This document shows positions 756 to 16,111 of a stretch of DNA of 64,000 bases, piece by piece. The DNA is from Podarcis tiliguerta. Taxonomy: Eukaryota. The DNA is taken from the NCBI GenBank assembly GCA_965153285.1, contig OZ229110.1. One strand, 5' to 3'. Within the stretch, counting starts at the first letter, position 1. Each line of letters opens with the position of its first letter. A model generated the notes under the pieces. That model made no database searches. It had not been told where the DNA came from and saw only the letters and a program-made list of their open reading frames with translations. Made by a program: the position numbers and the translations under genes.

Positions 756-3210
756 GTAAGTACCTTGTACCCCATATACTTGCAAATTGCAATGAAAACA
801 AGTAGAATAATGGCAGGGTGTGTTGTTGAAAGGATCTAGTTATTGTAGTATCAGTTTCTAAATATGTAATTATGTTGTTGGTTAAAATATAAAGTATCCC
901 TGCTGCCAATTGCCCAGTCCAGAGCACAAGTTGTATAGCCAATATTCATTCTTTATAATCTTTTTCAGCTACCAGCAGCTCAGAGTTTGGTTTATTTAAA
1001 TGCAGAAAATTAGGCTAGATATTTTGAGCATGCTGTCTAATAACTGTTTTGATTATAAATAAATTTCCATGAAAGATGTTCAGTTTTTTAGCACCCACAC
1101 TACAAACTCAACAACGTTGCTACAATTCATTTGATCCTTGATCTATTTTCAAACATTATTTATGCTAATATTTTGCCATTATCAGTACCTTTATCTTCAT
1201 ATGTCATTGTTTTTGAAACTTATTAATTTTATAATGCTAGCAGAGTTATATTGGCATCCTTTATATTAATTTTCTTTTAATTGCAAATCAAATTAAAAAC
1301 TCACTTTGGTATCTAATTTTTGGGTATCTAATAATGGCACTTTTATGTTCCATTGCTCTCAACTTCTGAGAAAAAGATGTTCCTATAACTGTTAATTATT
1401 TTGCAAGAATTTACTGTGCTATTTTATAAGATGTGTAGGGCATTTATTTGAAATGTATACTTATACCAGTTTGAAAACAGGGATTATTGTAGGAAAATTC
1501 ATTTTATAGAACAAAAACCTGTCATTGTTAGATGTACCAATGCTGAGCACTCAAGGAAAGTTAAATTTCCTTTCTCTTCTGCCATTTTAGCATTGCAAAA
1601 AGCTTTCTTTCTTTTTACCACCAGAGAATATCATCTCTGCCAGTAGGTGTCAGCCAAATATAGAATAGCCAGGAGTTTAACTTCAGAACTAGTAAAGCTA
1701 TATAGTGCCAGCTTGAAAGTAACACTAATGCTTTGACACCATCACTTTAAAAATCATAGGTAGCTGTCCTTGTCTTCAGTGGGGGTGGGGGTGTGCAAAA
1801 CCACAGTTGGGAAATAGCTTCATTAGGACCCTTGGAAATGTAATATTAATGGTGAGCAAGTTTTCAGGTTCTCCAGAACTCTTCATTGCACTGCATGTAG
1901 AGTTGGTGGAGTGAGAGATATAACATAATGGAGAAAGCCCCAAAGTGCAGTCTCAATTGTCTTAAATTGGAGTGTGGGATGTGTTACTTATACTTAATGA
2001 ATGCAAGGCACACATCACATCTAATTCATTGATTTCTCCCTCGTGTCCCATCTTGGACCACTCCACAAACTCCCTCAAATTTCAGGTGATTTTTGGAAGG
2101 GGCGTAGTGAGCTGCAGTGGGGAGGAGGGGGAAAGTGGGCCTTTTCCCTCACAATTCTGGAACCAACTCTATAGATCCAGCTCTTAGTATGAACATCTTA
2201 ATCTTTATTATTAGATTAATTGCTCCATTTTAATAATGGCTTGTTTGTAAGGACTCCCTGGTTATATAGGACTGGATTCAATTAAAGTACTAAACAATTG
2301 TACTAGCAGGAGCCAGTGGAAGGGCTCACAGTAGCACGGCGGGGTCTCCCCACACTATCTGCTTTGGGAGGAAAAAACCCCAGACTGCAGGAGGAGGAGA
2401 AGGGAGATTGTTCTGTCAAGCAAGCAAAAACACTTGCACCAAGGGAAAAATTGAAATAATGTGATGTTGAACTCCACCTATGGATTTGAATATGTGTAAG
2501 GAAAAAAATGGGATAAATGAACACTCTGAATTGGCTTATGCAGCAAGAGTAAAGTAACTGAAATGCATAATAAGTGCAAGCACAACAGGGAAGACTAGGA
2601 AGAGAAATGGTTTCCTGGGCTGCTGTTTGCGTATTCTGAAGGTGGGGCAGGGGTCAAGAAGACTTCTTTTTTTTCTTTTCTTTCCTTTTGCATTTGCTCC
2701 ATGTGGGCTATTAAAAAATTACTTTTACAACTGTAGAAATTACAAGTGGGCTGCATCAATAGTTGTCATTCTATTAATAGAACAGCTGCTTCTGTTCCAA
2801 AAAGGGACTGAGGTTCAGTGGAGACTTGGGGAAGTGATTATTGCCTCTTGTCTCAGCACCAACTTCCATGGTCTTCCATAGAATACCCCTCTCCCCCTGT
2901 CCTCCAGAACAACTTTCAGGGGTCAGAAATAGCAGGAAGAAATAGGTAACCATTGCATCTTCCTTTCCTCCCAGAAGGTTTCTGCTCACAGGAAGTCTGG
3001 ATCTAACCTAGTGCAATGTATTCAACTAAGTTCTACTCAACCCATTGAAAGAAATAGACCTAAGTTCATTGTTTCCATTCATTTGGTGGATCTACCTTGA
3101 GTAGAGGCAACCCAATTAATTTTTAACTACTTATTTGTAAAGATAATTTTATATAATTGAACAACACTATCCTAAATTGTTAAAATGTTTGAAATTGTTG
3201 TTGTGCACAG

Positions 3211-3277
3211 CTTCCTATATGCCAGGAATGCCAAGTGGAATGCCTCATTTCCCTCCTGGACCACCACCTAACCCAAG
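3211..3277 (+). CDS. TSG101: TSG101 coding exon 6 (proline-rich region)
   Basis: cacag acceptor; SSYMPGMPSGMPHFPPGPPPNP; gtaagc donor; 67 nt keeps frame. Confidence 0.95.
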
Positions 3278-5396
3278 GTAAGCTATAGTTTGCTGAATCT
3301 GCCGATCCAATAGACTACACTGTCAATATTGGACAATGTGATGTTGTGCCCATTTCTGAAATTGAGAGTGATGGACTTTAAAAGCATTAGATTTGTATTC
3401 CATTCATCTTGAGTTCAGTTTTGTCTGGGTGTTGAGTCAGGGTCTTTTATATGTTGTTCTTTAAATACAGTCATCAAAAAGCCTGGTTGCATTTAAGGCC
3501 CCTTCATTTGAGTAAAGCAATGATTAAGTGTATAGTGAGCAAAATTGGTGTCATTGTAAACCTATACTTCTAAAATGACTCACGTTCTTGCCTCTTTATA
3601 AAACTTTTCAGCTTGCTTCCTGCATTCTTAACATTATTTGGCTGCATCCTCTCCTGATGAGAGGCCTTTTATATATAAAAAACCTAGGCTTCCCATGTCC
3701 ATGTTCAAAGAACACATGTAGGGGGGTGCACAGCTATGCATTTTTTTTCTGTCTCTGATGTCTCTGTTCCCTCCAGCTCCTCCCCCAGACCTTTGTGCCC
3801 TTGGCAGAAGATCTGTTGGGAGAATGTGTGTAAGTTCAGCTTAATGCACACAGGCTCCTCCACAAAATTTACATCCACAGAACTCCTAGTTACATGGAGG
3901 AGCCTGTGTAGCTTTTGCTGAATGTGTGTAAGTTTCCCCTTCAGACTTTCTGCCCAATACGTATAAGTCTGAGGGTGAAGCCAGCAATAGACAGTGTGGG
4001 CAGTGGTGGTGGAGCAACTCCAAAACAGACCCAGGATTAGAACCCAACGTACTGGAGCAACTGCTGCACGTGTTCTGGCAAGGCCCCATTGGAGCTGATG
4101 CCAGTCTTGCTATCACCCCCATTGACACCTTGCCTGGCATTTCCGCCGCCATTGGGGTCTCTGTCCAATGCTGTTACCACCACCAATCACTACCCTCCAC
4201 CAGCAGGTGCCATTTTCATATGGGAGCCAAGCTACCACTCAAACTCCAGTCCGTGGTGGGTGGCCACTATCTCAGGACCCCCAAAATGCAGTGCTCACAA
4301 ACGGGCATTGCATTTGGGGTCTCTGAGATGGCAGCCATCTGCTGCTGAAGATCAGAGCTGAGTAGTAGCCTGTTTTCCATCAAAAACACCGCTGCCATCT
4401 GCTGGATAAGCACAACCAGAGGGAGTGAGAAATGACTGGTGGCAGCAGAATTGGTGGGCAGAGTGCCCAAGGGAAGACACATTCTTGGGCAGGGGAACTG
4501 AGAGAGGCCCAGTCTGAGAGTCTACTAAAATCTAACACCAACCTCGATACAATACACTGCTACCTTATGCACATGTTCTTTCAATGTATGGAGACAGAAG
4601 AGGGCTGAGGACTGCTTTGTTTCTACACATCGGCTCATTTTCTCCCTTTAGTTGTTGGCTAGTGTTAGTACAATGAATTAAACAGTAAGGCTTGTTCACA
4701 ATAGACACAGTTCTGAGTGTAGAAATCCCACACATGTACTGTATTGTATCTCCCTTTTTCATATCCTGTGGTATTATTGTCTCTAGTTTCCTACTATTGA
4801 TGGCTTATTAGTTCTGCCATCACTATATGGATTATATAACTTATTCTGAAAATGGAGTGCATGGCACCAACTGACTGGAAATAGAGGGCGCTAACTTTTG
4901 AGGAAAGTAACGTAGCATGCAGAAACTCTAAAATGTGTACATGCTCTGGCAGTTGCAGAAGCCTGCTCAATCTCCCCTCTGTAAATGAAACCACCAAGGC
5001 AACATAGACCTTTTCAAATGAAAATAATGCAACAAAGTACAAACCTGTTAACTGCTAACATAGAATGAACCATGAATAATTAGACTGAGTGCCTCTACCT
5101 ATCTTCAGCTTTAATCCACAAATGTGAAGAAACTTTGATCAGGGAACTTGAAATTTATTTATACATATTTGAATAACATTGATTAAAACATTGATACCTC
5201 TGAAACCTATGGATGACAACAAATTTCTCATGGGCTTGAATATTACTCTGACTGTTTATATCTGCATCAGTGGCTCTTTTTAAAATTCTGTTTGTCTATT
5301 ATAAATTGTTTAAATATAATAAAAAAATTGCTTATGAATGGAAATATTAACTAAAGAATGCATAACACTGTGTCTTTCTCCCCCTCCCCTTTCAAG

Positions 5397-5494
5397 TGGT
5401 TACCCAAGCTATCCTTACCCTCCCCCTAGCGGATCATTTCCACCAACAACTAGCACACAACACTACCCTTCTCAGCCTCCTGTAACTACTGTGG
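5397..5494 (+). CDS. TSG101: TSG101 coding exon 7 (proline-rich region), ends in phase 1
   Basis: Pyrimidine tract plus ttcaag acceptor; SGYPSYPYPPPSGSFPPTTSTQHYPSQPPVTTV+G; gtgagt donor. Confidence 0.95.
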
Positions 5495-6999
5495 GTGAGT
5501 AGCTTTGAAAGTGTCTTTTTCCAAATGTAATGAGATTGCTCATTCTAAATATGCAGCATAAAGCAAATCCAAATACACCTATTTCTGAGATGGGCATTAA
5601 GTGCCTCGTGGCAAAAACATCAGTTACATTACACTTTAACCATGCTGGATGTTCATTTTTCTCTCCATTGTTTGATTTATGGAACAATCATTAACTGTTT
5701 TCACTGTTCAACAAACTTCATTTTTATTGAACTGTTTTATGTAATGAAGTTCACATGTGTTTGAAAATATTATGTTTGCAGGTCCAAGATAAATTAAAGC
5801 CCAAGGGCTTCTTCTTTTTTAAGCATACATATTTATTATGTTCTTATTAACTGGGGGAATGATCTTGTAGTTATGAACTTTTCAATGATGAGAAAGGGGT
5901 GGGTTTCATTTGATCACACCAACCACTGAATGTACCAGGAACTTGAACAGCAGCATCATTTGGACACAAGAATGAAGAGGCATGTAGCCAGTGTGGAGTA
6001 ACTGCAGTCCAAGAGGCAGTACTACAGCCTATTTACAAGCCTTTTGCTATGTCAGCCAAGGATGAAGAACAGTACCTAAGGATGATATGAACTGAAGAAA
6101 CCTTGATTGCTGTCGGGTCAGTAGCACTGAAATACAGTTGAGTTCCGTGCTTAACTGGAAGTGAACCAAGCTATCCTTGACTCCATCGTGTTTTCCAGTA
6201 CACTCCCAAACTGTTATTTCCCCCCCACTCTTTTTGTGTGTGATGCAAGTGTTCATGAAGTAGCCCAGCTACCATCACCAGATCTTCATCTTGTGAAGTT
6301 TGTTGATCTGTAAGCTAAAGGTGCCATTCAACAGCTTTCTTCTGTTTCACATTCAGTGTAATTCTTGGGTGCTGAAATGCTTGCTCACCTGTGTTACTAC
6401 TTAGCCCAGAACTACCAGATCTGTTCAGGAAAGAAGTCTTAAGAATCTGAAAGTAGTGTTGCCTCTAGTGATAAGCAAAAACTTGAAACCCTCAAAAGAA
6501 TATAATTTAGAAAGCACATTATTATTTAGCACAAAGACTGCAAGATCCCTGGCCACATCATCATCCACTATTTTCTTGTCCAACGTCACATAGAATATAT
6601 TTGAACTCCAAAAATTATCATCACTTTTGTTGAGCTATTACTATTATCGTTATTGTTATTTTATAGGTCTATGGACTGCTTCAGAGCCCTATGCTATTGA
6701 AGCTATGTACAATAAGATCAAATACAAAAGATGCAAACTCTAAAAACAATAAAACCATTTTTACAATTATAAAATTGACTGGATTCCATGTCGGGAAAAG
6801 ACTTCATGAACAAAAACAAGTTGAAAATTGAAAGGAGAATGTAAAAATGATAATTTTCTATAGTTTAATACTGGAGGTCTACATTGTTTAGAAGAGATCA
6901 AATTACTATTCTTTCAGGGCAGTAATAGAAAATCTATCCCTAGTGCAACCTTTCTAGCATTTTGTTCAGAAAATGAATTTTTAGAAATGGAGGTGTAAT

Positions 7000-7520
7000 G
7001 TGGCAACAAAAATTAATCCTGTCAGGCAAAGTGTGGAAATGGTTACATAAATTTCTACATAAGATTTAATAGAGAAGTATAACTCTGCTCCCTGGGCTTT
7101 TTTAACAGTCGAAGCTTTCTCTTCTGCTTGAAAGGTATGGACTTCTGCTCCTGACCTTTTGTTAATTTTGGAAAAAAATCTGGAAGAACTTCATTCTGAG
7201 TAGAGCACATCTATCAAACCTATATACTTTATCAAGAATAAATGGATTGTTAGCAACTTTATTTAGAAAAGATATTTTCAGTTGCTCTTGTAAGATTGAT
7301 CAAAAGGGTACATGAGCATGCATTCCTTTCCATTGATCTTATAACTTGAATACAGGCATTTTTACCTGTAAACTTTACACACCAATCTTCAAATAAAGAG
7401 TTGACTTTATGGATTATTATGCCATGTATTTTAAGATAGAGGTGTCTCATGTTTTGATTTTTACATGGAATAATTCAGACAACACTGAATAAAGTTTTCA
7501 GGAGGTGCTTGGGCCACAAA
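7000..7520 (+). pseudogene. Heavily decayed tyrosine-recombinase (YR) remnant of a Ngaro/DIRS-type retrotransposon
   Basis: Motif ghosts read by eye, in the expected order: CKIDQKGT* at 7289-7315 (cf. SKTDQxGxG), H+1nt+YFKIEVS at 7423-7447 (cf. HSFRIGAA), FRRCL at 7497-7511 (cf. FRxYxRP); stops and frameshifts; lies directly upstream of the SGNH ORF as in Ngaro elements; boundaries approximate. Confidence 0.55.
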
Positions 7521-7561
7521 ATTTATGAAGCATTAATGTATGTTTGTTCTCTTAATAGCAG

Positions 7562-8139
7562 ATGGCAGAAGAAAGCAGAAACAGGTATGGATATGTGGTC
7601 ATTCTTACGTTTTCTGGGCAGAAAAAAGAGCACTTGAAAGAAGCTTTGGCCCACAGTTGGGCATTCGACTGGAGGATGCCAAACTACATTGGCTAGGAAA
7701 GAGTGGCATGACGTGGGATCAGTTGATACCCAGCCTATTGCGCACACGGCGGCGTCTAACAGATCCTGATATATTGGTGGTCCATCTAGGAGGAAATGAC
7801 CTTGGGACATACGCAGATTATGATCTCATAAGACAAATGAAGAAAGATATAATACATATTAAGATAACATTCAAGAACAGCATCCTTGTCTGGTCTAACA
7901 TTGTACCCCGCAAATCATGGAGCCAAGATATGTCCCATGAATTTATGGAGAAAAGCAGGAAGAGAGTAAATCGGGAAATCGACAGTTTTATGGAACGTAT
8001 TGGAGGGATTATAATCAAACATGATTCACTTGTCCCAGAGTCTCCAGGATTGTTCCATCTAGATGGTGTTCTCTTGTCTGAAAGTGGCACAGATGTCTTC
8101 AACCTGGATTTATTAAGTGTTTTGGAGACTTTGATCTAA
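7562..8139 (+). CDS. SGNH/GDSL hydrolase-like domain of Ngaro/DIRS retrotransposon origin; putative alternative terminal exon of TSG101 (ORF track 7540..8139)
   Basis: Motifs VWICGHS (block I), WLGKSG (II), VVHLGGNDL (III), DGVLLS (V, normally DGVHLS); no stop for 192 codons; acceptor cattaat...tgtttgttctcttaatagcag in phase with TSG101 exon 7. Confidence 0.85.
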
Positions 8140-8558
8140 CTTTTTCTTTGGAGAAGGAATAATAGATTTCAGTTTAAGCAAGTATGGAAGGTCTCTACAG
8201 ACAGAGATTATTAGAAGGTTGTGAACGGTGGTAATTTGAATTTTCAGGCAGTGGAATTGCACTGTTAATATGGTGGTTGGTATTAATTTAGTAATGTAAT
8301 TGCTAGTGGCATTTTTCTGCAACCACTGCAGTAAGATATTTGCCGATATATTTAACTGTTTTTTTTAATTCTGTTTACTTCCCCACCCCACTGAATTCAG
8401 TTTGCTTCTACAGTGTGCTTAGAGACACTGCCAAGCAGTTTAGTTTCCCTGATTGATATTCCCATCCGAAAAATGCTCAGTGAATAGCACGAGGTGATAG
8501 CTACCTAAAATATGGGTGCAGTAATAGCTTACAAAGCTATTTTATGTGGGTAGATCAG

Positions 8559-8564
8559 AATAAA
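8559..8564 (+). terminator. Candidate poly(A) signal for the SGNH exon (second AATAAA at 8736-8741)
   Basis: AATAAA about 420 nt after the SGNH stop codon; the region is AT-rich so chance occurrence is possible. Confidence 0.4.
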
Positions 8565-11500
8565 ACATAAAAAATATGTAACCTTGGAAAAGGCGAGTCT
8601 GACTAGAGCAGGAAAACAAACTGAAGCATTAGGGCTTCATTATACATGGACTCACATGTTACTCTAGTTATATGTTAATCACTTATGCTTCATGAGTGTT
8701 TATTAACATATGGCAGGCTCAGAGGTAAAATTCTTAATAAACCATAGTTCATTAAGCAAGAATAAGCATCAAGCTTATTCCCGCCTCCCCATGTGTGCCA
8801 GGTTCAGCCCAAGCTGCTTTTAAGTCACACTTTCCTCTGAAATGGGGAATTGAGCTTTAATACAAGCTTGCTAATCAGATTTCAGATGCTGGGTAGTAAA
8901 TCAACATTAAACCAGTGCTCCCAATTTCAGACATAATGGGAAACTGAGTTAAAGAGCCTGGGCTCAAAGTACTAAAACCAGCATAAACACCAGATGCTTG
9001 CACCAGATGCTCCTTCATGGCTTATTCAACCAGGAATGTCACATCCAAAATCCTTTATAAGTTTTAGATGCTGAAAGTTTTAAATGTTACTCTGCAAGAC
9101 ATTCATTGCAAAAGATCATGACTGCCCAGAGCTATTATGGCACTTGTTAAAACTGTGTGAAGGTATATATTCTGGTTACCTTGAAGCTTGTTGAACTGTC
9201 TGACAGTGACTGTATGACAGTTTTGCCATGTTTTGCTTTGGCATTACTGTGTCACCTTTCCTGGAAAAAAGGCAGATCGCCTGCATCAGAATTTACTTTA
9301 AAAATATAATCTAATAGAATGACCATTTTTCACAATCACTGTTAGTACTTACTAGGAAACAAATTACAGGGAAGCATATGCTTTTTTATTTTAAAAGAAC
9401 CCTGCCGTGAACTTGAATATTCTTAAGGAGAGTTGGTTGTGAATGAAGCCACATGAGCCAATATCCTTCAGTGTTTCGGCAGCACATTTTATGTAAATTG
9501 CTTTTATGCTGTAATGTGCCTTTCACAAACAAGAGAGAGCTTAACTTCAGTGGCTTACTTCACCTTCCCAGCTTCTCTGAAATCAGGTCAATATCCAGAC
9601 GAATTCTGGATTCGTCGGTATTGTGGTTTTAAATGGTCAGTACTTCCAAATATGATATCAATCTTGTAGGTTGATGTTGGAAGCTAAAATTTAGCACAAA
9701 TGTGATTCTGGAATGCAAGGGCAACAGGAATAGAATGTAGCAGTTTAAGATGAATGCTTGGATTACATTTATATTTTTTTACATAACCTCTCTTTGCATG
9801 CCACTCTGGAAATTTCCCACTAGATTGGGGGAGAACTATATAGCCTTTGGGAGGGACAGGAGCAGAATTCTACATGTTTATAGTGCGGTCCAGCTCATTC
9901 CCTTAAGGACATGGCAGGCGCTTGCTGGTGCTTACAACTGACTATAGCCTTCATTTTGAATACTTGCTTGTAGTAGGGACGTTAAGTTCCAGTATGGATC
10001 TGGGCCTACCTTTTCTACCTTTTTGATGTTGGGCAATGCTGTTTGATCCATCTAATTTGTATAACTTGGAGATTTGTGTTCTAACAATAAAATACTAGTA
10101 TTTCTTTCTTAGTCCTTACATTCTTTGTTAGTGAACACTTAGTACTGAATGATGTGGTGTGTTTTTTATAAAGACGATTGAGGAAAGATGTTCTTTGGGT
10201 TGCTAATTGTACTTGTTGAAACACTTCTTGAGTCAGCCCACAGTCAAACATCCCAGAAATGGTGATACTTTCCTCAGCTATATTTAGGTTGTATAAAAAT
10301 AGTGTGTTTAAGTAAGCTACTACCACACATAATTTTATGAAAGCAAAACTTTCAAGAGCTGTTGCTACCAGTAATTGGTGACCATTATCTGCATGAGATA
10401 AAAGTAAAGCTTTGGATCCAGACTTTGTCTTACATAAGTTGAAAGGACTTCTCCTTGCACAAGGCAGCTTACTGATCTCCCCCTTCAACTGCATTTCCTC
10501 ACCACCCATCTCATACTGTTCTTGAGGTTCCGTCTACTCTCAAGGGTGGCTTTTGGGGAGAATGCAAGGGAAAGCTTTCAGGCAAAAACATGTTGCTTTT
10601 TGGATCCATGCTATTAATTTTGTTGGGACTGTTAAAATTCAGTTATCACTGCTGTTAAGTACTATATATAGTTTACTTATGGTTGGTATATAGTATTTCA
10701 AGTATGTTGCATGTTTATGAATGAGCAACAAATATTAAGTTTGCTTTTATATTTTCATGTTAGCTCACAGCGTCTCCCTTGCTCGCACATCTGTACGAAC
10801 AAGGTGGCCTTTCAGAAATCTTTCTTCTTGTTGGAATACTCCAGTTTCTTGGGGAACTGGAATATAGCAGTGAGCAGAGCAACATCTTCCACAGGGTCTC
10901 TTTGATTTGCAGACTTAATTAAGCTTTGGGGGGTAAGTAGCAGTTATATAATTAGAATGGAATCCCCTGAAAAGACTAGTAGAGATGGATATCAGGATTC
11001 ATTCTTCTAAGATTTCTTTCCATAAATGTATTAACTTTCAGGTGTTCAGAGTTCACTTATGTTATCCTGGAGCAGGATCCCAATGCACAAGTGAAGATCA
11101 CTTCCACTGGGCAAGAGGTGGAATTTCCTTCTGCTGGAAATTCCTTGCAGCTCATGGGGGGCATTATGGAGGGCTCTCCAACCTTGGATGTTGTGCCACT
11201 AGAAGCAGGGTCTGAGAAAGAAGAGACCATAGCTCAATGAGCAGATATTTTGTCTGCTGAAGATGTGTCAGGTTAAATTCCTGGCATTGCCTGGTAAAAG
11301 GTTCAGTGAAGATAGACCCCAGGCTGATATCAAGGTTCTTTCCTTTCAATTTTTATTCTCAGAGAATGGTTTTTTTGCTCAAGAATATAAGCTGCATATT
11401 AAGGGTTTATGGCGGTGTTAATCTTAAGGTACTTAATTTGTGGGGTGGGGGTGGAGGTTACTACCTTATCTGAAGAAATGTCTTACTTGAAGTTCAACTA

Positions 11501-15908: not shown

Positions 15909-16111
15909 GTCCCAGCAGAGATGGCACCATTAGCGAAGATACCATTCGAGCTTCGCTTATTTCAGCAGTCAGTGATAAGTTGAGATGGAGAATGAAAGAG
16001 GAAATGGACCGTGCCCAGGCAGAGCTCAATGCCTTGAAGCGCACAGAGGAAGACTTGAAAAAAGGTCACCAAAAGCTTGAAGAGATGGTAACTCGCCTAG
16101 ACCAGGAAGTG
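15909..16111 (+). CDS. TSG101: TSG101 coding exon 8 (coiled coil)
   Basis: tacag acceptor; GPSRDGTISEDTIRASLISAVSDKLRWRMKEEMDRAQAELNALKRTEEDLKKGHQKLEEMVTRLDQEV; gtaagc donor. Confidence 0.98.

Follow-up and report, generated by a model that had tools for sequence, protein, structure and literature searches.

The 64,000-nucleotide stretch of Podarcis tiliguerta DNA analyzed here (contig OZ229110.1 of assembly GCA_965153285.1; hereafter the window) carries on its plus strand the 5' two-thirds of TSG101, as located by tblastn with an opossum TSG101 isoform, P0026. Within the TSG101 intron that begins after position 5494 lies an open reading frame (ORF) whose coding portion (7559-8139), together with its 3' untranslated region (UTR), is an alternative terminal exon of TSG101. 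Splicing into this exon is seen in RNA reads, and the resulting fusion recurs in gene models from mammals, turtles, a crocodile and squamates. The explanation that we consider probable is that this exon gives rise to a conserved chimera of the TSG101 UEV domain and an SGNH-fold domain, the latter probably non-catalytic and of Ngaro-type origin.

The donor of this splice is shared with canonical TSG101. The exon at 5397-5494, exon 7 of the first-pass annotation and delimited by its translation, RNA joints and loose read ends, encodes GYPSYPY...PSQPPVTTV, after which one extra G at 5494 is followed by GTGAGT. The exon thus ends in phase 1 (GTG G/GTGAGT), and the donor GT at 5495-5496 is common to both TSG101 isoforms. 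Canonically, the next exon is at 15909-16111 and opens the coiled-coil stalk; it was placed by the consensus of loose read ends, as RNA reads beyond 5496 give a 30-nt consensus identical to 15911-15940. The canonical intron after 5494 therefore spans 10.4 kb, the alternative ORF begins ~2,064 nt inside it, and the alternative terminal exon competes with the canonical exon at 15909. The acceptor region of the former (7531-7558) comprises a branch-point-like TTAAT, contained in CATTAAT at 7531-7537, an AG-free pyrimidine-rich tract and a first acceptor AG at 7557-7558. This AG belongs to a tandem TAG/CAG (NAGNAG) acceptor at 7556-7561, both cuts of which are in frame and differ by one Ala. The ORF as a whole (7540-8139, plus strand) has 199 codons, and the frame is open for 192 codons from the Asp codon at 7561 to the TAA stop at 8137-8139. 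Poly(A) signals (AATAAA) follow at 8559-8564 and 8736-8741, and the transcribed 3' UTR was traced by an RNA depth of 4-19 over 8140-8900. The phase of the exon end, the CATTAAT, the AG-free tract, the TAGCAG, the 192 open codons and both AATAAA signals had all been given at these positions by the first-pass annotation.

Use of this acceptor was observed in raw stranded RNA-seq data, two runs of one study, from a close relative that we call organism A. This organism shares ~59% of sampled words and is therefore roughly 2% divergent from the window; one RNA-oriented run search found no RNA data from the window's own species. Over the stretch to which reads were mapped (3100-8900), the joint 5494->7559 (GT..AG, 2,064 nt skipped) is present in four reads with four starts in one run and six reads with six starts in the other, with the shorter side spanning 58-59 nt. 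Two junctions, 5494->7559 and 5494->7562, had been proposed as targets for an RNA-seq check, with 5494->7562 as the main reading of the first-pass annotation. The joint at 7559 is the one found, and the reads use the first AG of TAG/CAG to give ...TTV-A-D-G..., while the second AG is represented only by 408 aa annotated isoforms of relatives and not by reads.

The same reads provide an estimate of how often the exon is chosen. The canonical continuation from 5494 is present in 80 and 50 reads in the two runs, and the upstream joint 3277->5397 in 143 and 81. RNA depth at 7562-8725 is 9-19 and 5-15, compared with 0-4 in the intron at 5622-7561, so that the SGNH exon is covered 5-10 times as deeply as the intron preceding it, and every read maps to the strand that carries the TSG101 exons. 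With bin depth scaled to its 67 exon bases, the exon ending at 5494 has a depth of ~138 and ~80, and the ratio of the SGNH exon to it (~9% and ~12%) agrees with the junction shares of 5% and 11%. The SGNH-exon form is a minor isoform, amounting to roughly 5-12% of transcripts in the two samples, and the canonical exon accounts for the majority. Small indels that distinguish organism A from the window occur at nine places in the intron and three in the 3' UTR, with none in the ORF.

The remaining TSG101 exons of the window precede this donor on the plus strand. They comprise a UEV-domain exon truncated by the window start (1-165; 98% identity to P0026 in tblastn), an exon encoding the end of the UEV domain and the start of the proline-rich region (~629-766, ends approximate; 85% identity) and a proline-rich-region exon (3211-3277) supported by tblastn, by the joint 3277->5397 and by loose ends before 3211. 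Contigs of two small runs guessed to be RNA (X1 and X5) are unspliced and extend from 5467 to ~9.6 kb and ~12.6 kb, running through the intron and the SGNH exon with a mean depth of 24-35 versus 3-11 in the preceding intron; these may be intron-retaining or read-through transcripts. Two minus-strand ORFs overlie the SGNH exon, at 7523-7810 (95 codons) and 7818-8102 (94 codons). As the RNA reads are all on the plus strand, these are most simply read as shadows of the SGNH coding frame.

Searches of predicted proteins indicate that the same chimera is present in other amniotes. A first protein search returned 199 aa ORFs with identical ends and 73-82% identity. P0026 itself, annotated as 'tumor susceptibility gene 101 protein isoform X6', reads ...PSQPPVTTV-A-D-A-RRKQKQVWICGHS... 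to ...ETLI, and a cluster look-up identified a Gekko kuhli gene model with the same TSG101-SGNH join. Using the SGNH part of P0026 as query, we retrieved TSG101 isoform models of 407-409 aa with this join, which is found in more than 15 named amniote species. The predicted fusions come from Monodelphis, Notamacropus and Tachyglossus among marsupials and monotremes, from the turtles Pangshura and Chrysemys and the crocodile Crocodylus, and from the squamates Varanus (409 and 408 aa), Sceloporus, Naja, Crotalus, Euleptes, Sphaerodactylus, Anolis and Ophiophagus. The first-pass annotation knew of no such isoform in mammals, but the marsupial and monotreme models predict one. Throughout, the join reads ...PPVTTV-(A)-D-G/A-RRKQKQVW..., in which the presence or absence of Ala matches the two possible cuts in TAG/CAG and accounts for the 409/408 aa pairs in relatives. 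Another retrieved protein, P0043, carries exactly the five amino-acid differences present in organism A reads.

The domain composition of these proteins is consistent across models. The UEV domain (PF05743) is recognized at E values of 1e-43 to 1e-51, and the 216 residues of the UEV domain and proline-rich N-terminus are identical to canonical TSG101. In the seven fusions submitted to Pfam, the UEV domain was accompanied by a weak GDSL_2 match, and no Vps23 core was found. Together with the junction reads, these models bear out the earlier proposal of an in-frame alternative last exon that yields a UEV, proline-rich and SGNH chimera of ~410 aa. Three further proteins, P0036, P0069 and P0070, which form one cluster from three assemblies, are TSG101 fusions with an intact SGNH exon and a longer SGNH branch. 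Their UEV and proline-rich parts carry residues that look placental-type, and some placental mammals may keep the isoform. Word-indexed searches and an exhaustive representative search found no bird, amphibian or fish TSG101 fusion among predicted proteins, which is not proof of absence.

Across the named lineages, the 192 residues of the SGNH domain align without an indel and end at the same stop. Disruption of the ORF in related species had been raised as a possible outcome by the first-pass annotation; the frame is intact in squamates, turtles, crocodile and mammals. Identity of the SGNH domain between lineages is 68-85%, compared with 70-88% for the TSG101 proline-rich region and 78-94% for the UEV domain in the same pairs. 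The TSG101-linked sequences form a clade with support of 100/99 in one tree and 100 in another, and its branching order, with mammals first, then turtle and crocodile, then squamates, is that of the species tree. The TSG101 SGNH exon is single-copy and orthologous across amniotes. The ORF is not a chance occurrence, because orthologues of the same length and with the same ends exist in many amniotes and the predicted junction is present in RNA reads. As judged from these sequence comparisons, the chimera has been vertically inherited since the amniote ancestor, for ~300 million years, under purifying selection. An instructive counterexample is P0193, a decayed relative from a Logan contig that is ~70% identical to the P0036 group and closest to it. 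Two motif residues are gone from this sequence, the Gly of block II and the Asp in G-G-N-D (see below), and its frame breaks down after ~130 residues. It is probably a pseudogenized copy in some lineage and shows what unconstrained decay looks like, unlike the TSG101-linked exons.

Assignment of the domain to the SGNH fold is supported by structure prediction. Pfam matches the ORF to Lipase_GDSL_2 with an E value of 9e-5 and 23.4 bits, under the gathering cut-off of 32.9 that several other family members pass, and a PDB sequence search with the ORF gave no meaningful match. An AlphaFold2 model built from a 41-sequence alignment has a pLDDT of 93.2, a pTM of 0.90 and alternating strands and helices. 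Foldseek aligned this model with 170 PDB entries at E<=0.001, led by GDSL/SGNH enzymes at TM scores of 0.65-0.75; the matches include Bacteroides GDSL-like lipases, platelet-activating factor (PAF) acetylhydrolase Ib, TesA, sialate O-acetylesterases and the esterase domain of a zebrafish L2 retrotransposon ORF1.

The alignment also locates the catalytic blocks. Block I, G-H-S at 7597-7605, keeps the nucleophile Ser and is at least 90% conserved in all relatives; block II, G-K-S-G-M, keeps the oxyanion-hole Gly; and block III, H-L-G-G-N-D-L at 7783-7803, keeps the oxyanion-hole Asn, with G-G-N-D invariant in 41/41 aligned sequences. The GHS and HLGGNDL blocks of the first-pass annotation are thus present, but its DGVHLS is an error, since 8062-8079 reads D-G-V-L-L-S. 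In characterized SGNH enzymes the histidine of the DxxH motif is the general base, and in block V of the window (D-G-V-L, 8062-8073) its position is occupied by Leu (CTC, 8071-8073). Block V is D/N-G-V-L in 25/25 TSG101-linked sequences and D-G-(V/I)-H in 14 of the 15 other family members compared, so the alignment identifies the change from His to Leu as a shared derived character of the TSG101-linked clade. The Asp of block V is in turn Asn in crocodile, Anolis, Sphaerodactylus, the P0036 group and organism A (8062 G>A in reads). By these residues, the domain is a triad-defective SGNH fold rather than an 'SGNH hydrolase'. The clade-wide replacement of His, followed by drift of its partner Asp to Asn, points to a domain that has been kept for its fold and pocket and not for hydrolysis.

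The SGNH domain belongs to a large family of 1,716 clusters at 50% identity, in which the nearest relatives outside TSG101 are 41-45% identical. Among these are caecilian proteins, near-identical copies of which are annotated on more than one chromosome and at several distinct loci, as well as multi-copy SGNH ORFs of frogs and lizards. One caecilian copy is modeled as 'SPRYD4 isoform X2' (P0329, Rhinatrema bivittatum), and a snake 'VGLL4 isoform X5' (P0189, Erythrolamprus reginae) has a related SGNH ORF as its C-terminus. Because SGNH ORFs end the unrelated host models VGLL4 and SPRYD4, and because the caecilian copies are multi-locus, the data suggest that this ORF brings a splice acceptor and has repeatedly been trapped as a terminal exon. 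Ngaro elements of amphibians (Xenopus families) carry an SGNH ORF after the recombinase ORF (PMC9210276). On balance, a mobile element of the Ngaro type is the likely source of the TSG101 exon.

The same subfamily also includes si:dkeyp-121d4.3, a ray-finned-fish gene found in teleosts and gar (P0087, P0089, P0090 and P0221-P0324), which encodes proteins of ~1,100-2,600 aa, most of them 1,700-2,150 aa, with CSDE1-type cold-shock domains and a C-terminal SGNH domain. This SGNH domain is 41-44% identical to the TSG101 exon and keeps the catalytic His in two aligned fragments (P0008 and P0009). Records of this gene carry one of several wrong names (ZNF318, SRRM2 or CSDE1), and the SGNH module appears to have been put to host use here a second time, independently of TSG101. 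Also in this subfamily are the giant proteins P0079-P0084 (1,300-3,100 aa), which contain four to seven tandem SGNH domains at 29-34% identity. A match of RVT_1 to the N-terminus of the frog protein P0011 gave weak leads only (score 0.77) and was set aside as not usable.

Taken together, these results can be assembled into a model of how the isoform arises and what it may do. An Ngaro-type SGNH ORF most likely inserted in the sense orientation into the phase-1 intron of TSG101, bringing its own splice acceptor. The donor after 5494 is now joined either to the canonical exon at 15909, in the majority of transcripts, or to the TAG/CAG acceptor at 7559, and the minor mRNA encodes a protein of ~409 aa composed of the UEV domain, the proline-rich region and the 192-residue SGNH-fold domain. 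In canonical TSG101, ubiquitin and P(S/T)AP motifs are recognized by the UEV domain, while the stalk and C-terminal core hold VPS28, VPS37 and MVB12/UBAP1. With the UEV domain retained, ubiquitin and P(S/T)AP binding would be kept. As the stalk and core exons lie past the alternative terminal exon, the chimera should be unable to bind VPS28, VPS37 and MVB12 and, without the coiled-coil stalk and Vps23 core, presumably could not assemble into ESCRT-I. In the SGNH module the nucleophile Ser persists, as do Gly and Asn of the oxyanion hole. Its general-base His was probably lost once, in the stem lineage, and its triad Asp then changed to Asn several times. It is thus most likely a non-catalytic, ligand- or membrane-binding module and not an esterase, and the isoform may serve as a UEV adaptor outside ESCRT-I or compete for the ligands of TSG101.

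Several observations weigh against this model. At the RNA level, the splice is supported by 10 junction reads, from one study and from a sister species rather than the window's own, and RNA coverage of 4-7 persists at 8900, where the mapped stretch stops, so that the SGNH-exon transcript may end beyond that point. The chimera itself is known from RNA reads and gene models. Selection on the ORF was compared at the nucleotide level solely between the window and organism A, where three synonymous and five non-synonymous differences are found; this comparison has no power, and the ORF is not obviously constrained in it. The loss of catalysis is deduced from one residue, for which another His, in F-H-L-D just before block V or in G-H-S, could conceivably substitute. 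As for origin, Pfam found no recombinase or reverse transcriptase in ten stop-free plus-strand segments over 6155-7559, although old remains may be unrecognizable, and there is no direct repeat of at least 25 nt, terminal or split, in 5495-11000. Reverse transcriptase or recombinase domains are likewise found by Pfam in 0/18 long SGNH relatives, which instead contain cold-shock domains, a VGLL4 part and a Tc1-type HTH. Finally, the tree fixes no firm sister group for the TSG101-linked clade.

The observations on origin would also be compatible with an SGNH exon whose source was a host gene in this subfamily, with Ngaro elements having acquired their own copy separately. This possibility, which we regard as unlikely but as deserving some weight, would account for the missing transposon domains beside the exon and in the 18 long relatives, for the lack of a firm sister group, and for the placement of si:dkeyp-121d4.3 among the closest relatives at 41-44% identity. 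However, the domain, its stop and the poly(A) signals form one intronless block within the intron directly after the acceptor, the arrangement expected of an element's ORF after insertion; the nearest caecilian, frog and lizard relatives are multi-copy and dispersed, and Ngaro elements with this ORF are documented (PMC9210276). The attribution to Ngaro-type elements of the DIRS order made by the first-pass annotation therefore fits the multi-copy relatives and the literature, but finds no element trace or terminal repeats beside the exon.

The main mechanistic rival to a non-catalytic domain is an active esterase that uses another base, in which case the UEV domain might bring a working enzyme to endosomes, the midbody or budding sites, where its targets would be ubiquitinated or carry PTAP motifs. 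The Ser, the Gly and the G-G-N-D motif have been invariant for ~300 million years, and the predicted model has an intact fold. Moreover, the His two residues before the block V Asp (F-H-L-D) is invariant in the TSG101 clade and mostly missing in other family members. Nevertheless, the general-base His of DxxH is Leu in every orthologue, and the change of Asp to Asn independently in several lineages is what would be expected once the triad is unused. We therefore consider an active enzyme improbable and retain the non-catalytic module as the preferred interpretation.

Conservation upstream of the splice junction bears on a further alternative. The stretch at 7540-7561, read as M-F-V-L-L-I-A-D, does not vary among five squamate genomic ORFs, and the crocodile genomic ORF has the same V-L-L-I-A-D within F-L-C-V-L-L-I-A-D. 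Although intronic in the fusion mRNA, this stretch exceeds the domain in conservation, an indication that the splice signals at 7540-7561 are constrained. The same identity could instead mark the N-terminus of an independent nested gene with its own promoter, an ATG at 7540 and a stand-alone 199 aa product, of which the TSG101 join would be a minor by-product. Gene models of Carettochelys and Naja that place other 5' exons on the same acceptor instead of TSG101 exons would agree with this, as would some unspliced coverage into the exon, with a depth of ~2 just upstream. The crocodile ORF, however, has no ATG at that position, and a polypyrimidine tract with a NAGNAG would equally conserve the pre-acceptor stretch. 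In addition, no joint from another upstream site reached the listing threshold, the depth ratio of the exon to the TSG101 exon agrees with the junction ratio, and more than 15 annotations join the exon to TSG101. A nested gene accordingly has a low probability in our estimate, and the alternative terminal exon of TSG101 remains the better description of this ORF. That the exon is a functionless exonized relic, with splicing noise onto an old insertion giving a transcript that is degraded or a protein that is irrelevant, would suit the minor transcript share, the Pfam score under the family threshold, the lost catalytic His and the five non-synonymous versus three synonymous changes at close range, but it is scarcely credible beside a 192-codon frame that has stayed open, without indels and with an unchanged stop, in lineages that parted at the amniote ancestor, and beside P0193, in which neutral loss has broken the motifs and ended the frame after ~130 residues.

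The fusion models described here are already public, unremarked, in RefSeq, Ensembl and UniProt, and full-text literature searches turned up no publication that connects TSG101 with an SGNH/GDSL domain or with Ngaro. What is gained here is recognition of the isoform, evidence that it is spliced and conserved, and notice of its triad loss. TSG101 is among the most studied factors in trafficking and virus budding, and work in human and mouse would never meet this isoform. A chimera that for ~300 million years has coupled the module recognizing cargo and viruses to another effector domain suggests that the UEV domain has a role independent of ESCRT-I, and its architecture is naturally dominant-negative-like. 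More speculatively, and as a long shot, the amniote ancestor might have possessed a second TSG101 protein in which a dead, retrotransposon-derived esterase fold stood in for the ESCRT-I assembly region. It would be a dedicated reader of ubiquitin and PTAP independent of ESCRT-I and, in a regulatory or decoy role, could tune or restrict the ESCRT-dependent budding of enveloped viruses and retroelements, with possible later loss in birds and most placentals, among them the model species used for TSG101 research. The SGNH module may also be a recurrent exon-trapping cassette, considering the VGLL4 and SPRYD4 models and the conserved fish gene. Should the Ngaro origin be right, no earlier vertebrate gene is known to derive from the SGNH accessory ORF of a retrotransposon with a tyrosine recombinase.

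The type of event, a host-element chimera formed through an alternative terminal exon, is known, and what is new is the captured module, the host and the loss of the triad. In CSB-PGBD3 and SETMAR-like fusions, an intronic ORF of an element supplies the acceptor, the coding block, the stop and the poly(A) signal, and alternative splicing gives both the normal host protein and a chimera with the host's N-terminal domains; the intronic ORF of TSG101, itself probably from an element, does likewise. The in-frame junction from host to ORF and the long conservation seen here are further likenesses to CSB-PGBD3. Cases of the CSB-PGBD3 and SETMAR type capture DNA-binding or catalytic domains of DNA transposases, whereas the module in TSG101 is an accessory domain with an esterase fold, of the type that a tyrosine-recombinase retrotransposon carries, and its host is a subunit of ESCRT-I rather than a chromatin or repair protein. 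The SGNH ORF of Ngaro elements (DIRS order) appears to have the same G-H-S, G-G-N-D and D-G-V-x motifs and a similar size. Unlike Ngaro, the TSG101 exon has no neighboring reverse transcriptase, ribonuclease H, recombinase or split direct repeats, is single-copy, and has lost the block V His.

Solved SGNH/GDSL structures, namely PAF acetylhydrolase Ib alpha (1WAB), E. coli TesA, the Bacteroides GDSL-like lipases 3P94/4PPY, sialate O-acetylesterases and the ZfL2-1 ORF1 esterase (4C1B), share with the TSG101 domain a three-layer alpha/beta fold and blocks I-III, at TM scores of 0.65-0.75 over ~200 columns and only 10-20% identity. In contrast to these enzymes, the TSG101 domain is without the catalytic His and is probably not an enzyme. 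With canonical TSG101/Vps23, the chimera shares its N-terminal 216 residues, promoter and exons, and has the SGNH domain in place of the stalk and core. A parallel in architecture is UEVLD (UEV3), a vertebrate protein in which a UEV domain is fused to a lactate/malate-dehydrogenase-like domain. UEVLD likewise combines a TSG101-type UEV domain with an enzyme-fold domain and has no ESCRT-I core, but it is the product of a separate gene, uses another enzyme fold and has no link to a mobile element.

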